From: Amphiscolops sp. MND2022
Taxonomy: Eukaryota
Assembly (NCBI GenBank): GCA_964187785.1
Contig: OZ076415.1
Coordinates: forward strand, 52,886,001-52,950,000
Direction: 5' to 3'
Length of the DNA stretch: 64,000 bases
Translations under genes and position numbers: made by a program
Shown here: positions 16,605-24,570 of the stretch, one piece after another
How the letters are laid out: each line of letters opens with the position of its first letter
How positions within the stretch are numbered: the stretch's first letter is position 1
The notes under the pieces: model-generated
What the model was told of the DNA's origin: nothing
The model's input: the letters and a program-made list of their open reading frames with translations, nothing else
Database searches by the model: none

Positions 16605-18097
16605 TGTCGCATTTAATAATCTGAATAAGTTTCTAAATGATTCCCCAAAAAAGTGGAAAGACTTAATGACTTCGTTTGCGGACCACGAGCTGTGCAATTT
16701 GAAACAACATCAATTGAAAGACTTTTGAAGAAGTGTGTTTTTGTGTTTTGTTTATTTATAAAACTTCAAAGCGACCCTCATCTTAGAAAAACCTGGACCG
16801 TTTTCCCCCTACTTCTCCTTTGAGAACCTGGCTGTCTTATTGCACGCCTCACTCCTTGAGGGTAATATTGCGCCCCCAGGCGTTGAACATGCTCATCCTC
16901 AGCCTCCTCGACCTTCAGTGAAGTGGTCATCCCGTCAATACACAGTGTGCGGTCAAGAAGGAGAACAAGACCACATCACCGGGCTCCTGCATGCAGTACA
17001 CTATGTGTTCCCGGAACTACAGCAAGTCATCCCGGAGCGTACTAGGCAGGGAACGAAGCCTTTCCAACGGAGGCACGATCTTTTCCTGCAGAGGGTCTTC
17101 ATCTCGCATGTGCGATGGGTGAAGAACCACAAGTTCGTCCCCCTTTCCAGCTGGCTGACAACGCTTCCTACCGGGTTGGAGTCTATGTGCCAACCACTCC
17201 ATGCCCAACCACCACTTGCAAGGAGTGAGACGTGCTCAATGGAGTTCCCACTAATATCTTGGACAATCTGTACATATTGCTCGTCTAACGGGTCTGCGTA
17301 GAGGGCCTCATATCGCCAGCGAGCTCCTGGAAGACCATCGAAAGCAGCGTTCTTCGTCCGTGTACCCTTGATGATTGCCAGAAGCTGCTTCTCACTACGG
17401 AAACAAACAGCAACACACTTCGCTGCTCCGAAACACAGCACAGGATTGCCACGTATAATAATGGGATGTTCCGTTTCCTCAAGAAATCCGTTATGACCCC
17501 TCCCTCGCCCGAGTCAAAGGAAGCCTCCCTGACTCTAGGTCCATTGTCAGGCTTAATAGAGCCTCAAGCTCGTTCATCCTTAAAATAGCACAACTTTACT
17601 TTTTCTTCATGTATATTTGTGGTTTAAATTATGATTTACAAAATTTAGTTGAAAACGAATTTTTCAGTTCATACAAGTTCACTGTGGCAACGCGTTGAAT
17701 GCTATCTTTGTTTGATTGACCTTTCCCAATCCCATTCTCATTGCTCTTGCCCCAATACATGTTTTACGTTGCGTATTTGTTGTCTAGACCGAATTGGACA
17801 ATGTGTCTTGTCTTGCCAATGCATACAACAGATTTGTTAGCCAGTACGCGTGCAGTTACATAGTTCCAAATTACATAAACTTGTAATTTTTATGTCGATT
17901 GACTGGTATATGAATTCTAAACATTGTGCTTCATTGTCAAAAATCCCACCACAGGATGAGAGCTGTCAACCGCATTGCACTGCAAACACACGCAAAAGCA
18001 ATAACCTTTTAGTTTGTTAAAGCTATTAAGGCTTCCACTCCGTTTTGTTCGAGTCTCTTCAGCAAAAAATCAAAGACGTTTTTATAGATAGTGATCA
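16605..18097 (+). repeat. Inferred long (~1.5 kb) 5' LTR of BEL-1
   Basis: Begins TGTCGCATTTA like the post-PPT copy at 23734; ~250 bp clearly homologous; ends ...TGATCA just before a TGG primer-binding-like site; the right boundary is inferred. Confidence 0.6.
16775..17577 (-). pseudogene. JmjC-domain (cupin-fold Fe(II)/2-oxoglutarate dioxygenase) ORF, intronless, about 3 frameshifts and a stop
   Basis: ATG at 17577; HPIIIRG; SGWHIDSNPVGSVVSQLERGTNLWFF (HxD at ~17181-17190, GxKxW-like); after a frameshift IVYCMQEPGDVVLFSFLTAHCVLT (distal His at ~16945). Confidence 0.8.
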
Positions 18098-18099
18098 AG

Positions 18100-18117
18100 T
18101 GGTTCGCCATTCCAGAA
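18100..18117 (+). promoter_or_regulatory. Putative primer-binding site of BEL-1
   Basis: tggttcgccattccagaa, 2 nt after ...CA and ~110 nt before the gag ATG; loosely tRNA-Glu-like, cognate tRNA uncertain. Confidence 0.45.
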
Positions 18118-18210
18118 CCGAGGGCGAGTCAACTTCATAAGTTACAAGCAAGGCATTCTCGCAACCAATAGAGGGACTTCGACGCGAACATTTGGTCCGC
18201 CGACCCGGAT

Positions 18211-21200
18211 ATGGCTGAAGCAGATCCAAACAACTGGGAGGAAGATGTTCGCAAATTTGTGCGTGTGAGGGCAGGACACAAGGCGGCCTTCACAAAGTAC
18301 GAGAACAGCGTTGATGACCTCGTAGCAGATCACGCAGTTACTAGTGAGAAGCTGTGTGAAGCAGAAGCGCTACTATCTACATTGCAGAACAAGTACAAAA
18401 CAATCTTTTTTCGATGGGACGCAGAGATCGAGCTGAAAATTGAGGACGATGCCAAGTTGTCAAAAGAACAGGAGGTATCCTCAGACTACGAGGCAAGGAT
18501 GAACATTGCAATTGCCAGTCTCTGTGCCCTAATCGACAATATCAAGACCCAGTTGAAAACGGGGCTCAAGGCAGCCGCATCAACCTCTTCAAGTCCGTCG
18601 ACTGCAGGACGCATGCGTTTACCAAAGCTCCAAGTGCCATTCTTCACCGGCGCCTACACGGATTGAGTATCCTTCGGTTACTTTTTTAGGCAGCAGTGGG
18701 TTCAAGCAGTTTTTTATCGGATTCTGAGAGACTAAACTACCTAAAGGCCTGCAAGATGCGATGCAGTGAAAATTGACAGCTCTCTTAGAATCACGGATGC
18801 CAACTACCCCATTGCGTGGCAGCTATTGGAGAACGGATACGGCAACACACGCAGTGTAGTGCACGCCATCTACAAGCTATTTGGTCCCAGTCTTCCATGA
18901 AGATAATGTTTGGTTCTGGCCTCAGGAAACTTTACGAAAACTTCAATGAGCATTTTAGGGCACTAGAAGTTTTTGGTCAACCAGTAAACCAATGGAGTGC
19001 TGTATTGGTTTTCTGCATCGCTGACTAGCTCGATGCAGAGCCAAGGAAGCAATAGCAACTCAAACATCCTGTTAAAAATGTCCTTGCCTGGAATGATTTA
19101 TCCAAATTCCTTGATGAACGAAGCAGGACATTAGAGAGCGGTGCAATCAAAATGATTACCCAAGCCAACAAGATGAGCGATCAAGGTGAGTTGCGGCATC
19201 AGTCTTACACAGCCTCAATGACGTGTAGTGAAAGATGTGACGTTAAACATAAACTTCATGCTTGCCCAGAATTCAAGAAGATGTCAGTTTCCCAGAAGTA
19301 CGCCTTAGTGACGAAGAAGCGTGCCTGTTTCAATTGTTTGCAGACTGGGCACAGTGTGAGCGAATATGGTTCTAAATTCAACTGTAGGGAGTGCAAAGCC
19401 AAACACCACACACTATTTCACCGGGCGAAGCCTTTGACAACATCGCTCGAGGGGTCTAACAAACCAACGACGAGGGTGTCAACTTCTGGCAATACAACAA
19501 TTGCAAGTTGAGCAGGTCAGCAAGCCGATGCGTCCGTTTTGACTGGGCATTGCGGGTCTGCATCTCCAAACGCTGATGCTCTACTTTCAACGGCAATGGT
19601 ACCCATCTATAATAAAGCAGGTGAAAAAATACATCTAAGAGTCTTGTTAGAATCCGGTCTGCGGTTAGTTTCATTACTGAGGCAAAAACGAAGGCACTAA
19701 TGATGAAAGTGCAAACAAGACGGGAACTTCTAAAGTCGGCGCTTAATCTAAGGCTCAAAAAGCGCAAAAATTTTTTCGAATATTGAATATTTTTCTTTCA
19801 GAAGTGCCACAAAATGTAAAAAGGGGGCCCTTTGGGCTTTATCAACATATATTCTGTTGCAAAGTATCAAAAAACTCGAAAGGGGGACTCTTTTGATACA
19901 TTAAAAATTTTTTGAAAAAAAGTCGCACAATGCCGAAAACAAAATTGAAAGGGGGGACCCTTTAGTCTCGTCCGGTTTTGTAGGCTACGGTAAAACAGTA
20001 AATAATGAAAGGGGGACCCTTTTGCACTAATTTCCGCTGACCGGACTTGGCCTTATCCTAATAGTTTTAGTAGCTTCGATTGTAAGAAAAGTGGCCCAAT
20101 CAGAGTGAGATTGTAGTCTGACGAAAAAGAAGAAAAAAACTAGCCACTGTAAGTGTCGGTCACTTTTCACTAGAAAAGCGCCGACTAAAAAGACCGTCAA
20201 CTATCATAGCCCTGGGTGTTTCCAGCTCACAAAGGACGTACGGCGTGTTACCTGCTTCCATCGCAGGGTTGATAGACGTTAACTTTCACGTGATTCCGAA
20301 GATTACTGGGTCCCTACTTAACGCAAATGTAGATGTCTCCCAGATGAGTCACGTAGATCATCTGAATCTGGCGGATCCCATTTTCAGCGTGCCTGGGAAG
20401 ATCGACACGCTTCTGGCAGCCGACATCATTGCGGATCTAATGCTGAACAATCGAATCAGGGACAACGGTCTCATACTTCGAGAGTCCCTCCTGAGCTGGA
20501 CTGATTCGGGTCCAATACTGTAGAGAATAGTGGCAATAAATGTGGTGTCACACAAGTTACTATCAAGATTCTTGGAACTCGAGAGTGTACCAAAAAAGAA
20601 GCATCGCATCATAGAAGAGGCTCATTGCGAAGAACATTTCGTTGCAACAACCACAAGAGAATCAACAGGAACGTTCAATGTGAGATTACCGTTCAAGGCA
20701 GACAGTCATTCGCTGGGCCAGAGTCGTGCCTCTGCAATGAGACGATTCATCAATCTTGAAAACAAGCTGAAACGTGAAAACTTGCTGAAAGACAGGTATT
20801 CAGAATTTATCAATGAATTTCTGAAATGGGGTAATCTAGAGAAGGTGCATGATGGCAAGTTGGACAATGCAAACCACTACTACATGCCTCACCACTGTGT
20901 AAATAAGGATTCTAGTACAACTACGAATTTGCGGGAGGTCTTTGATGCAACTGCCAAGACAATAACAGGCTTCTCGCTAAATGACTGGTTAATGGTGGGC
21001 CCGAAGCAGCAAGACGAAAAATTCAGCATATTGATACGGTTCCGATTCTTCAAGGTTGCATTGTCGGCAGACGTTGCTAAAATTCCGTCAGATTGGTCTA
21101 GACCCCAGAGACAGGGACATCATGCGACTGCTCTGGCGCTTCAGTGAAATTGAGCCTGTACAGACGTTTCGCCTGACACGTGTGATTTATGGGGTAGCAA

Positions 21201-23600
21201 GTTCTTCTTATCACTCAATCAGGTGCTTGAGGGAAGCAGCCCAGCTTGAGGGTGTACCGAAGGCTGCCAAAGAAGCAATCTTACGTGACTTTTATGTAGA
21301 CGACATCCTGACAGGGGCTAGAAGTATTGAGGCAGCTAAGCAGCTTCTCAAAGACTTGACGCAAACTCTTGAACGAGTTCAATTTGATCTTAGAAAGTAG
21401 ATCAGCAATGTCCTCCCTCTTGTTTTAGCACTTCCCGCAGAGTATAGGGAAGCAAACGAAAACCTGAAGTTTCTTGAGCCAACTCATATAAAAAACATTG
21501 GGTTTCACTTGGAACCCTTTTGATGATTTGTTCTCGTTTGAGGTAGCTCACATCTCTGATGACATCAATGACGAAGGAATGACAAGAAGACAAATGCTTA
21601 GTGACATCGCCAAAGTTTTTCATCCTTTGGGCTGGTTGTCTCCGGTGATAATTCTACCGAAGAGCATGATGCAAAAAGCCCGGCAAACAAATGTCGATTG
21701 GGATCAGAAACTGCCAACCAAGAATGTTGTGAGTTATCGGACCTGGCGGAAGAATCTACACAGTTTGAAAGAGATCAAGTTGCAACCCTTTGTTTTGATC
21801 GAAGAACAGCAAGACCCTTTCGCGTTACATGTCTTCTGTGATACCTCAGAGAAGGCATATGAAGCCTGTGTATACGTGGTCTCAACCAATAGTCGAGGTG
21901 AGAGAAGTTCTAATCTGCTTGTGGTAAAATGCAAAGCCTCTCCACTGAAAACACAATCTATTCTTCGCTTGGGATTGTGTGCTGTGCTTCTCGGATCCCG
22001 TGTAGTGTCATTGGTCATTCAGGCACTTGGGAGAATTTCTGTCAATATACATGCAACAACGGGCTGGAGCGATTTCACAATTGTTCTCTGTTGGCTTTCT
22101 CAAGAACCAAGAAACTGGACAACGTTTGTCGCCAACAGAGTTGCCGAAATACAGCGCAATGACCAAGTTCATTGGCAACACGAACCCACAGAGGACAATC
22201 CAGCTCATGCAGCGTCTCGTGGTGTTGAGCCAAGTGCACTGAATAGCCGGGAAGTTTGGTGGAAGGGACCAACTTGGTCACGCAATGGAGTGCAACCGTC
22301 ACAACCGAAACAAAACTTCACTGATGAAGCAAAAAGTACCCTTTTTTAGTTCAATTTTTTTAACGGTGCACCCATTTCCGCCTTTTTGTTGGCGGACGTC
22401 TTCCTCACGCCAATTTACCAGACGAGGCTAAGTATCAGCGATTAGTTGCGAAGGAAGCAGACTCGTTACGCTTGTCATTAAAAAACCTCATCTGGATACA
22501 CTACACGGCTGCCCTATTCAAGTGATGGCTCAGATCAGATCAAACTACTGGATACCCAACATCCGTAGTGTAGTGAGACAAGAACTTCAGCAGTGCGTGA
22601 AATGCAGCAGGTTCACAGCCAAGTCGAGTGAACATGGGTGACCTTCCCAAAGAACGCGTTGACGTCCAACCAAAGCCTTCGGAAACGTGGGGATAGACTT
22701 CGCAGGAACTTTTCTATGCAAACCAAGCAGCAAGGCCAGAAGTCAGGACAAAGCCTACATGGCTTTGTTTGTTTGTTTGCCAGTAGGGCTGTCCACGTTG
22801 AGTGTGTATCCGATATGACCACTTTAGTGTGTATGGCAGCAAAACAACGTTTTTTTATCTCGAAGAGGTTGATCCAGTCAAGTATTCTCTGACAACGAAA
22901 CTAACCCTGTTGGCGCCGCCAATGAGATCCAGCAATTGCAAGAGGTTCTATCTAGCAAGCATGACAACTCGCAGCAATCCCTAGCTAATGCTATCGGTAT
23001 CCGATGGAACTTCATACCCCAAGGGCTCCTCATTTCGGAGGTTTATGGGAAGCGGCAGTGAAAAGTGCTGAAAACATTTGCGCAGAACGATGGGCAACAG
23101 TGTCTTGACATTTGAGGAGTTGATTACTCTTTTTTGTAGGATTGGAGCAGTGCTAAACTCGCGCCCAATCAGTGTAATGTCAGATGATCTCAATGAAGTC
23201 GAACCACTTACAACTGCACATCTTTCAATTGGACAGGGAACAGTAGTGTTACCTTCTTTTTCACTGAACCAAGCCCACAACGTGGACAACTGTAATCCCT
23301 CGAAAAGCTAATTATACATTCAAAACATTCTGTTGCATTTCTGGAACCGACGGACAAAATAATACGTACCACATTACAAGAGAGAAGCAAATGAAGACAA
23401 GAAACAAGCAATTTGAGAGTGGGCGACATAGTTTTCATCATCGATGACGATTCAGCACCTCTACAAAGGCCAATTGGTCGCATCCATTATGTCTACTGTG
23501 GTCCCGACAGTGCAGTCAGAGTATTCAATGTGAAAACTTCAACTTCAATATACAATCGTCCTGATCACTAGCTGAAAAACTACCTATTGATACATAAACT
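18211..23600 (+). pseudogene. BEL-1 gag-pol polyprotein (many stops and frameshifts; interrupted at 19715-20190)
   Basis: ORFs 18211-18666, 19152-19511, 20245-20523, 20530-21147, 21056-21400, 21498-22349, 23078-23311 give Pao-type gag, PR, RT, RH, IN in order. Confidence 0.9.
19715..20190 (-). mobile_element. Helentron-like HINE family A inserted in BEL-1 protease region
   Basis: Sub-TIRs agtcggcgc/gcgccgact; removal restores the frame ALMMKVQ-RPSTIIALGVSSSQRTYGVLPAS; insertion between A|A (T|T) with no TSD. Confidence 0.85.
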
Positions 23601-23720
23601 CGTCAATCGTTAGTGAAACACCCTGTACATAGTTGTTTATCAATGCTCATTTTCTTTGAACTCTTCTGATGCTATATTTGTACGTCACGTGACTTTTTGT
23701 TGATTATGCCACGCAAAATC

Positions 23721-23984
23721 AAGGCGGGCGGTATGTCGCATTTATTAATCTGAATAAATTCCGAAAAGATTCCCCAAAAAAAGTGGAGAGATTTTTCGAA
23801 TTTTTTGCAGACCACGAGCTGTGCAATTTGAAACAACCTCAAGTGAATTACTTTTGAACAAGTGCGTTTTTGTATTTTGTATATTTATGAAACTTCAAAG
23901 CGACCCTCACCTTAGAAAAACCTGGACCGTCTTTTCCCCCTACTTCTCCCTCGTAAAACTGGCTGTCTTATTGCACGCCCCACT
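23721..23984 (+). repeat. BEL-1 polypurine tract (23721-23733) and truncated 3' LTR (23734-23984)
   Basis: aaggcgggcggta then TGTCGCATTTA...; homology to 16605-16853 stops where hAT sequence starts. Confidence 0.8.
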
Positions 23985-23989
23985 TATCC

Positions 23990-24570
23990 TACATTATCCT
24001 ACAGTTTCCTAAGATGGATCCAAACATGAAATACATCCACAAAAACGCCCAAATTGTGAAAAGTCACCATTTTGAGAATGGCTTGGTCAAAATAATTGAT
24101 GGGACAGAAGCTGCCCTGACTGTATCTGAGAGAATTGTGTGCAACAAATTGCGGAAAAGGGACTGTATCCGGGATGTGCCGGAAGCAGATAACACTGATT
24201 TTGCGACTGGAGTGTTGGCGAAGCCTAAGAAAGTTGACATGAGCAATGACCAATTTGTTGATTGTCGGTTTCTTGCACCAACATCCATTTTTCTCGAGCG
24301 TTTTTTTAGTGAAGCAGGGTACGCTCTGACAAAATATCGGGAGAATTTGTCACCTCTGCATTTTAAGGAGCAATTGTTTTTGTATGCTATTTCTTAATTG
24401 TGGTCAGTTGATACTGTAAAGGGGATAACTCAAAAGCAGTGATTTGTTCTGAATTTACATTTGTTGCAAATAGTTGCCAATCAATTGGGAGACATTCGCA
24501 ATTAAAATCAACTAAATTGTTTTCGTTTTCTCAGAAAGTTATAATTGCAATTATTAATTTCCAGTCCCTG
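23990..24570 (+). mobile_element. hAT-superfamily DNA transposon 3' fragment (C-terminal dimerisation region and right TIR)
   Basis: LAPTSIFLERFFSEAGYALT..RENLSP..F..QLFL motif (ORF 24014-24397); right end reads CAGGGACTGGAAAT on the minus strand at 24570. Confidence 0.75.

Follow-up and report, generated by a model that had tools for sequence, protein, structure and literature searches.

A predicted JmjC oxygenase gene encoded antisense within the long terminal repeats of BEL/Pao retrotransposons of Amphiscolops sp. MND2022

Can the long terminal repeat (LTR) of a retrotransposon hold a complete protein-coding gene of its own, oriented against gag and pol? The question is raised by a 64,000-nucleotide stretch (here, the window) of contig OZ076415.1 (C7, positions 52,886,001-52,950,000) in the 1.07-Gb genome assembly of Amphiscolops sp. 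MND2022, which contains a degraded element of the BEL/Pao type. A sequence-only reading of the window had proposed that this element begins with a long LTR bearing an antisense gene for a JmjC dioxygenase. Our analysis shows that, in the retrotransposon family to which the element belongs, the LTR encloses the complete coding frame, which occurs in the LTRs at both ends of elements as well as in solo LTRs. We are highly confident of the joint conclusion that the gene is LTR-borne and that it has been maintained by purifying selection.

Two blocks of the window, 16605-16853 and 23734-23984, are direct repeats with 87% identity, which bears out the earlier placement of an LTR start at 16605. A genome search with window positions 16605-18210 as query returned at least 40 matches (83-86% identity) covering positions 1-1586 or 1-1606 of the query. 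Copies ending at position 1586 are 3' or solo LTRs, and the 3' copies follow the 3' end of pol and a polypurine tract (PPT). Copies continuing past 1586 are 5' LTRs, and the sequence beyond them reads TTTGGTCCGCCGACCCGGAT-ATG, i.e., a primer-binding site (PBS) followed by the start of gag. From these two kinds of copies, the 5' LTR of the window element is defined as 16605-18190 (+ strand), a 1586-bp sequence with TG...CA termini (TGTCGC...GCGAACA). The proposed LTR length of about 1.5 kb was thus close to the actual one. The competing idea that other family members have LTRs of about 250 bp, which would make the JmjC sequence a one-off insertion, does not agree with the genome, in which at least 40 copies, paired or solo, match all 1586 bp.

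The PBS, TGGTCCGCCGACCCGG, is located at 18193-18208 (+), 2 nt past the LTR end, and is followed by the gag ATG at 18211. It is kept in every 5' LTR copy and also in two divergent BEL lineages. The sequence-only reading had instead placed the PBS at about 18100 (CA-ag-TGG); this assignment is ruled out, as the site is internal to the LTR in every 3' and solo copy. The PBS-like sequence at this position, CA-ag-TGGTTCGCC (18096-18108, +), has 8-9 nt in common with the true PBS and could be what remains of an earlier LTR/PBS junction or of a duplicated PBS region. The family copy L012 has a comparable site at LTR positions ~1517-1531 (CA, 2 nt, TGGTCCGCC), about 90 bp upstream of its LTR end.

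At the opposite end of the element, the PPT AAAATCAAGGCGGGCGG (23715-23731, +) is followed by TA and lies just ahead of 23734; the sequence-only reading had put the PPT at 23721-23733. Each 3' LTR of the family has the same PPT ahead of it. The 3' LTR of the window (23734-23984, +) is truncated: only its first 251 bp are left, without the JmjC gene and without a target duplication on that side, and no LTR sequence other than the two blocks is found elsewhere in the window. The intervening gag-pol region (18211-23714, +) is broken by many stops and frameshifts into open reading frame (ORF) pieces of 92-283 aa. Its pol is of the Pao type, with a Pfam Peptidase_A17 match (E=1.8e-37) at 21498-22346 and a weak RVT_1 match at 21056-21397. 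With 13% divergence between its two LTR remnants, the window copy is an old insertion; it belongs to an older subfamily and is a dead LTR retrotransposon. A Pao-type pol, TG...CA LTRs with adjacent PBS and PPT, and short target duplications (see below) assign the element and its family to BEL/Pao.

In the main family, an intronless ORF of 274 codons from the ATG (293 codons from stop to stop) occupies LTR positions 182-1003 of 1612 in the antisense orientation. A tblastn search of the genome with the JmjC protein gave at least 144 matches (from 617 candidates), about 26 of which span the whole protein with no stop, and a complete ATG-to-stop frame was found in 21 of the 49 copies examined. The frame is present in 5', 3', and solo LTRs; open frames occur in both the 5' and the 3' LTRs of the family and sometimes in solo LTRs. 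This agrees with the earlier proposal that the gene is duplicated at each transposition and left behind in solo LTRs. Many LTR copies form 5'/3' pairs about 7 kb apart, and others are solo. Matching 5-bp target duplications surround four full elements (CCATG, ACGTT, CCAGT, and CCCTG) and five solo LTRs (CATCG, TACTG, AAAAC, AAGTT, and CGAGA). Because the two LTRs of five pairs are 95.2-99.4% identical, the main family must have been active recently.

Element sequence is also found in four sequencing runs, in the form of contigs of DNA-like behavior that carry no information on strand, transcript start, or level. In these runs, the LTR depth is 5 to 7 times the gag depth, and both LTR edges have many different flanks, consistent with the existence of many solo LTRs. 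Some low-depth contigs (runs X1 and X2) join L012 position 1541 to 2634, i.e., LTR ~41 to ~1134, and skip the entire JmjC frame; they may represent a rare LTR deletion variant without the gene.

The JmjC gene of the window itself is a pseudogene. It lies in a GC-richer block, as had been pointed out, with a G+C content of 0.50-0.55 in 16854-17580 and about 0.36 on either side. On its minus strand, the motifs HPIIIRG, WHID, and GTNLWFF share one frame and QEPGDVVLF..AHCV is read in another, just as the sequence-only reading had claimed. Mapping by tblastn with an intact relative (P0001) resolved four pieces, all on the minus strand. Piece 1 (17497-17577; 89% identity) contains codons 1-27 from the ATG at 17577, and piece 2 (17079-17513), in a second frame, contains approximately codons 28-169 with HPIIIRG, WHID (the His and Asp metal ligands), and GTNLWFF; piece 2 by itself matches Pfam JmjC with an E value of 0.098. 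Piece 3 (16930-17088; 79% identity) covers codons 167-219 in a third frame, has an in-frame stop, and includes QEPGDVVLF and AHCVLTG with the third metal ligand, His. Piece 4 (16802-16930, within an ORF at 16778-16930; 81% identity) corresponds to codons 226-268 and the basic C-terminal tail. The frame terminates at the stop at 16778-16780 and thus does reach into the sequence that both LTRs retain, as noted before. An antisense gene starting from ATG 17577 thus stands, but the single frameshift that had been assumed understates the damage: there are four pieces in three frames, with one in-frame stop and a gap of roughly six codons, and the 2-oxoglutarate (2OG)-binding Lys is changed to Asn (K151N, in GTNLWFF). 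These lesions together make the window copy a pseudogene, in which the three metal ligands can still be read, in different frames.

To what kind of protein do the open copies correspond? Searches and structure predictions were carried out with natural copies or with pieces of the broken copy. A natural full-length copy scores 24.2 bits against Pfam JmjC (PF02373; E=5e-5, cutoff 24), P0001 scores 18.4 bits (gathering cutoff 24), and 20 of 28 diverse relatives match at an E value of 0.01 or lower (best, 3.6e-7). The Pfam score is therefore marginal for single sequences and clear for the family. When 1.84 billion representative proteins were searched exhaustively, only 73 relatives came to light, with no close host gene among them, so that these proteins make up a small, unnamed family. 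Although a single-sequence search of PDB sequences gave nothing meaningful, a profile of 35 family members ranked ceKDM7A (2e-5), PHF8 (1e-4), and KIAA1718 first and aligned the motifs T-x-x-H-x-D, G-x-K-(L/I)-(W/F), and H-x-V-L with the ligands of ceKDM7A and PHF8.

Structure prediction points in the same direction. With the 35-sequence alignment, AlphaFold returned a single domain with a predicted local distance difference test score (pLDDT) of 87 and a predicted template modeling score (pTM) of 0.83, in which only the basic C-terminal tail is disordered; this alignment was needed, as a run with 10 near-identical sequences gave a pLDDT of 34.6 and was discarded. The top 50 PDB entries and the top 30 entries of AFDB-SwissProt found by Foldseek are all JmjC enzymes, an Atlas shape search gave template modeling (TM) scores of 0.59-0.65 to JmjC clusters, and PHF2, PHF8, KDM7A, and KDM2A fill ranks 1-17 of VIA-align. 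The ligand columns are conserved in the 35 relatives: T/S130 in 30, H133 in 35, D/E135 in 33, K151 in 31, and H214 in 34. Profile and structure searches thus back the JmjC identity put forward earlier, including the conserved HxD...H triad and the Lys and Thr/Ser positions. They support a compact JmjC Fe(II)/2OG oxygenase with the double-stranded beta-helix fold of the cupin clan that, as modeled, is closest to KDM2/KDM7/PHF8, and it is likely, judging from the ligands and the model, that the protein is catalytically competent. PHD, CXXC, F-box, and JHD modules are absent: JmjC is the sole Pfam domain detected in the product (274-293 aa) and in its relatives. The protein is therefore KDM2/7-like in fold and ligands but is not a canonical member of that group. 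Its basic C-terminal tail, RGRSRGKRRSRFS, is conserved, and similar tails exist in other lineages, which suggests a role in nuclear import or nucleic acid binding.

Selection was assessed in two ways. Nei-Gojobori estimates of the ratio of nonsynonymous to synonymous substitution rates (dN/dS) among 21 open copies gave 0.34 for the 105 pairs with a dS of 0.1-0.2 and about 0.6 for the closest pairs, while four 5'/3' LTR pairs, each from the same element and hence diverged since insertion, gave a pooled value of about 0.70 (synonymous differences, 13.5; nonsynonymous differences, 29.5). Such a pattern would result from constraint on the frame as long as lineages are active, followed by drift after insertion. 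In addition, differences from an intact reference frame were counted by codon position, with no frame repaired. In each of the ten lineage comparisons, differences are 2 to 3 times more frequent at third positions (p of 0.02 to 7e-13), and even the dead copy of the window shows differences of 9.1%, 8.8%, and 17.5% at the three positions (p=7e-4). Taken together, these comparisons indicate purifying selection on the JmjC gene in several BEL/Pao lineages.

The gene is not confined to the family of the window. Two further BEL/Pao lineages of the same genome, with pol about 50% identical to that of the window element, carry a JmjC frame of 45-47% identity, again antisense and in both LTRs, and use the same PBS. 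Between BEL lineages, the LTR DNA can be aligned only at positions 534-659, which encode the JmjC catalytic core. A distant branch (28-30% identity, E values of about 1e-11 to 1e-13) is found in Ty3/gypsy-type elements, antisense between pol and an env-like gene. These carriers have RVT_1, RNase H, Integrase_H2C2, and rve domains, and their env-like gene matches Baculo_F (E=5e-6). The pol-JmjC-env arrangement exists in this genome and in a related assembly; in the former, elements with a 300-codon antisense JmjC relative and an env-like F-protein ORF are located at C7:47984000-48003000 and C1:34799000-34818000. One of the two has identical 444-bp LTRs, and at the other locus the element is flanked by internally repetitive blocks with a unit of about 100 bp. 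Judged by these sequence contexts, the JmjC gene is a recurrent and always antisense passenger of two LTR retrotransposon superfamilies. A transposon setting is not established for every family member, however, because the relative P0046 (L035) has no retrotransposon gene within 9.6 kb and its neighboring ORFs have no Pfam match. On the same strand, 3.6 kb upstream of P0046, an ORF at L035:3164-3634 (+; ...GEEITVCYSENYF...CRC) resembles by eye the C-terminal end of a SET domain, with no Pfam match.

How might such a gene be expressed? A minus-strand TATAAA is found 57 nt (offset 55-57) upstream of the JmjC ATG in 18 of the 22 copies in which the ATG anchor could be located; the corresponding predicted antisense promoter region of the window (17578-17700, -) has TGTAAA instead of the family TATAAA. 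In the sense direction, 27 of 29 main-family copies have AATAAA near LTR position 1440. Since the gene begins about 180 bp past the PPT and lies upstream of this sense poly(A) signal, it is most likely situated in the unique 3' region (U3) of the LTR, and the last 150-400 bp of the LTR would constitute the repeat and unique 5' regions (R/U5). A location in U3 would mean that reverse transcription copies the JmjC gene into both LTRs at each insertion.

The explanation we favor on balance, as a whole, is that the LTR-borne antisense gene encodes a JmjC oxygenase that is under selection and counters silencing in trans. The 600 bp that separate the JmjC ATG from the LTR end are AT rich and would act as a divergent promoter, with gag-pol transcribed rightward and JmjC transcribed leftward from the TATA promoter within the LTR. 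The basic tail would carry the enzyme into the nucleus, where it might strip repressive lysine methylation (of the H3K9me2, H3K27me2, or H4K20me1 type) from chromatin, an activity proposed from its likeness to KDM2/7. Working in trans, the enzyme would keep elements of the family transcribable and would thus be a transposon-encoded counter-silencing factor. By analogy with these demethylases, its use as a histone demethylase against silencing is a tentative proposal. More speculative, and rather doubtful in its full form, is the view of a histone lysine demethylase built into LTRs that erases H3K9/H3K27-type marks in trans, has been exchanged between BEL/Pao and Ty3/gypsy elements, and is present in two copies in every provirus and as a working gene in every solo LTR; it would be a mobile enzymatic counterdefense, in an animal, against transposon control by PIWI-interacting RNAs (piRNAs) or heterochromatin.

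Several observations weigh against this explanation. Three elements (L016/L048, L006/L049, and L025/L050, at C7:33.56 Mb, C9:44.16 Mb, and C1:6.9 Mb) have the same premature JmjC stops in both LTRs (codon 36, codons 87 and 102, and codons 93 and 96). Identical stops in both LTRs imply that these elements inserted with a JmjC gene that was already dead, and hence that the gene is dispensable in cis. Either the frame was broken in the reverse-transcribed RNA already or the LTRs were homogenized later by gene conversion. Insertion of broken-frame elements fits action in trans and equally allows the gene to be nonessential. Furthermore, the protein is devoid of the reader domains (PHD, CXXC, and JHD) that target KDM2/7 enzymes to chromatin; the dN/dS of 0.34 is moderate, and choosing only open frames biases it slightly; the placement in U3 is based only on sequence signals; no antisense AATAAA or ATTAAA is conserved downstream of the JmjC stop in the family copies compared; and searches of sequencing records found no RNA run for the organism.

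The lack of a chromatin reader domain would also suit an oxygenase with a target other than histones. A protein or RNA hydroxylase or demethylase might modify a host restriction or translation factor, Gag/Pol, the element RNA, or the primer tRNA and aid replication directly; JMJD5, FIH, TYW5, JMJD6, and JMJD7 are also strong structural matches, and an RNA target has a precedent in the 2OG oxygenase AlkB, an N6-methyladenosine (m6A) RNA demethylase in orchid Gypsy elements (PMC9289625). We regard this alternative to histone demethylation as rather unlikely. It is improbable that silencing is countered without catalysis, with the protein as a scaffold or decoy or with the antisense RNA as the active product. 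A model for the former has been proposed with Epe1, a fission yeast JmjC protein of the same broad clade that reportedly opposes heterochromatin nonenzymatically (PMC7192584), and the insertion of broken-frame elements could be read in this way too. However, a scaffold would not need the five metal/2OG ligand positions, which are kept in 86-100% of 35 relatives, and the excess of third-position changes points to selection on a protein and not on RNA alone.

The broken frames, together with the contig hint of a rare LTR variant that skips the ORF (the L012 joint of 1541 to 2634), would be expected as well if a host JmjC gene or other mobile sequence had landed once in an ancestral LTR and had been hitchhiking since as a neutral passenger. 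This reading is largely refuted, and we give it hardly any weight: dN/dS lies well below 1 and third positions account for an excess of the changes, about 26 copies keep open frames, BEL lineages with LTRs that cannot otherwise be aligned have conserved the gene, a relative exists in a second retrotransposon superfamily, and the 73 relatives among 1.84 billion proteins include no close host gene. Selection could alternatively act at the level of the host, if dispersed copies, especially open-frame solo LTRs, had been co-opted as a multicopy host gene; solo LTRs with 5-bp duplications, of which two of six were examined, do keep open frames. Yet the copies are young, numerous, and polymorphic in state, selection is seen between element lineages, the same gene resides in both LTRs of recently inserted elements, and no orthologous fixed locus is known, so that co-option appears very improbable.

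A few features lie outside this argument. In the window, a 127-codon ORF (24014-24397, +) begins 30 bp past the truncated 3' LTR and has no Pfam match at an E value of 0.01 or lower. Elsewhere in the genome, one LTR (L015 and C6:38940343-38958392) has the 3' end of pol before it and PBS and gag after it, with further copies 6-11 kb away on each side, as if elements were arrayed in tandem with LTRs in common. The PBS complement, GAATCCGGGTCGGCGGA, in a T-loop context has 424 genome matches, compared with 0-2 for a control; these include a tandem array with a period of about 212 bp (C6:56171530-56194415), presumably an array of tRNA genes.

If the histone demethylation proposed here is true, the LTR-borne protein would be the first enzymatic anti-silencing factor from an animal transposon, and escape from heterochromatin- and piRNA-guided repression would become directly testable. 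Placement of the gene in the LTR doubles its dosage per insertion. Solo LTRs, which are usually counted as dead remnants, would remain protein coding, and dozens of dispersed JmjC copies could affect host chromatin.

LTR retrotransposons are known to acquire accessory domains and genes, such as env, chromodomains, AlkB, and DNA methyltransferases. The gene described here is an accessory gene of this sort; it encodes a predicted JmjC oxygenase, lies antisense in the LTR proper, and has a relative in a second superfamily. Our full-text literature searches, which missed most subscription journals, turned up no LTR retrotransposon with a JmjC gene and thus no published description of this arrangement. 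In its placement, the gene is like sag of mouse mammary tumor virus (MMTV), a complete coding frame in the U3 of the LTR, of which each provirus has two copies and which persists in solo LTRs; sag differs in being sense, driven by viral promoters, and a superantigen instead of an enzyme. Genes opposite gag-pol are also exemplified by HBZ of human T-cell leukemia virus type 1 (HTLV-1), ASP of human immunodeficiency virus type 1 (HIV-1), and the antisense ORFs of plant Ty3/gypsy elements, which are driven from the 3' end or the LTR. In contrast to the LTR-borne gene, these genes mostly occupy internal sequence adjacent to the 3' LTR, and their products are not JmjC proteins and lack any known enzymatic fold.

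Among JmjC enzymes, the KDM2/KDM7 group (JHDM1, PHF8, PHF2, and ceKDM7A) provides the best profile matches and shares the ligand pattern T/S-x-x-H-x-D ... G-x-K ... H-x-V-L. The LTR-borne protein is only 9-13% identical to these enzymes, has 274 residues, lacks PHD, CXXC, F-box, and JHD modules, and is encoded by an intronless gene inside a retrotransposon LTR. The closest published element belongs to an orchid Ty3/Gypsy lineage, in which an AlkB-type 2OG oxygenase ORF has become fixed; its product demethylates m6A in RNA in vitro and was proposed to counter host surveillance (PMC9289625). The two systems have in common an LTR retrotransposon with a fixed extra Fe(II)/2OG oxygenase ORF, but the orchid enzyme is AlkB and not JmjC, occurs in plants, and is encoded by an internal ORF of 25-kb elements rather than by an LTR gene. 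With respect to the proposed role, the nearest counterpart is VANC of the Arabidopsis VANDAL transposons, for which an undoing of the epigenetic silencing of its own family, in trans, has been proposed or shown (PMC5735166 and PMC10398659). VANC is a sequence-specific DNA-binding protein of a DNA transposon, has no oxygenase fold, and is experimentally supported in its role, whereas the comparable role of the LTR-borne JmjC protein is inferred.

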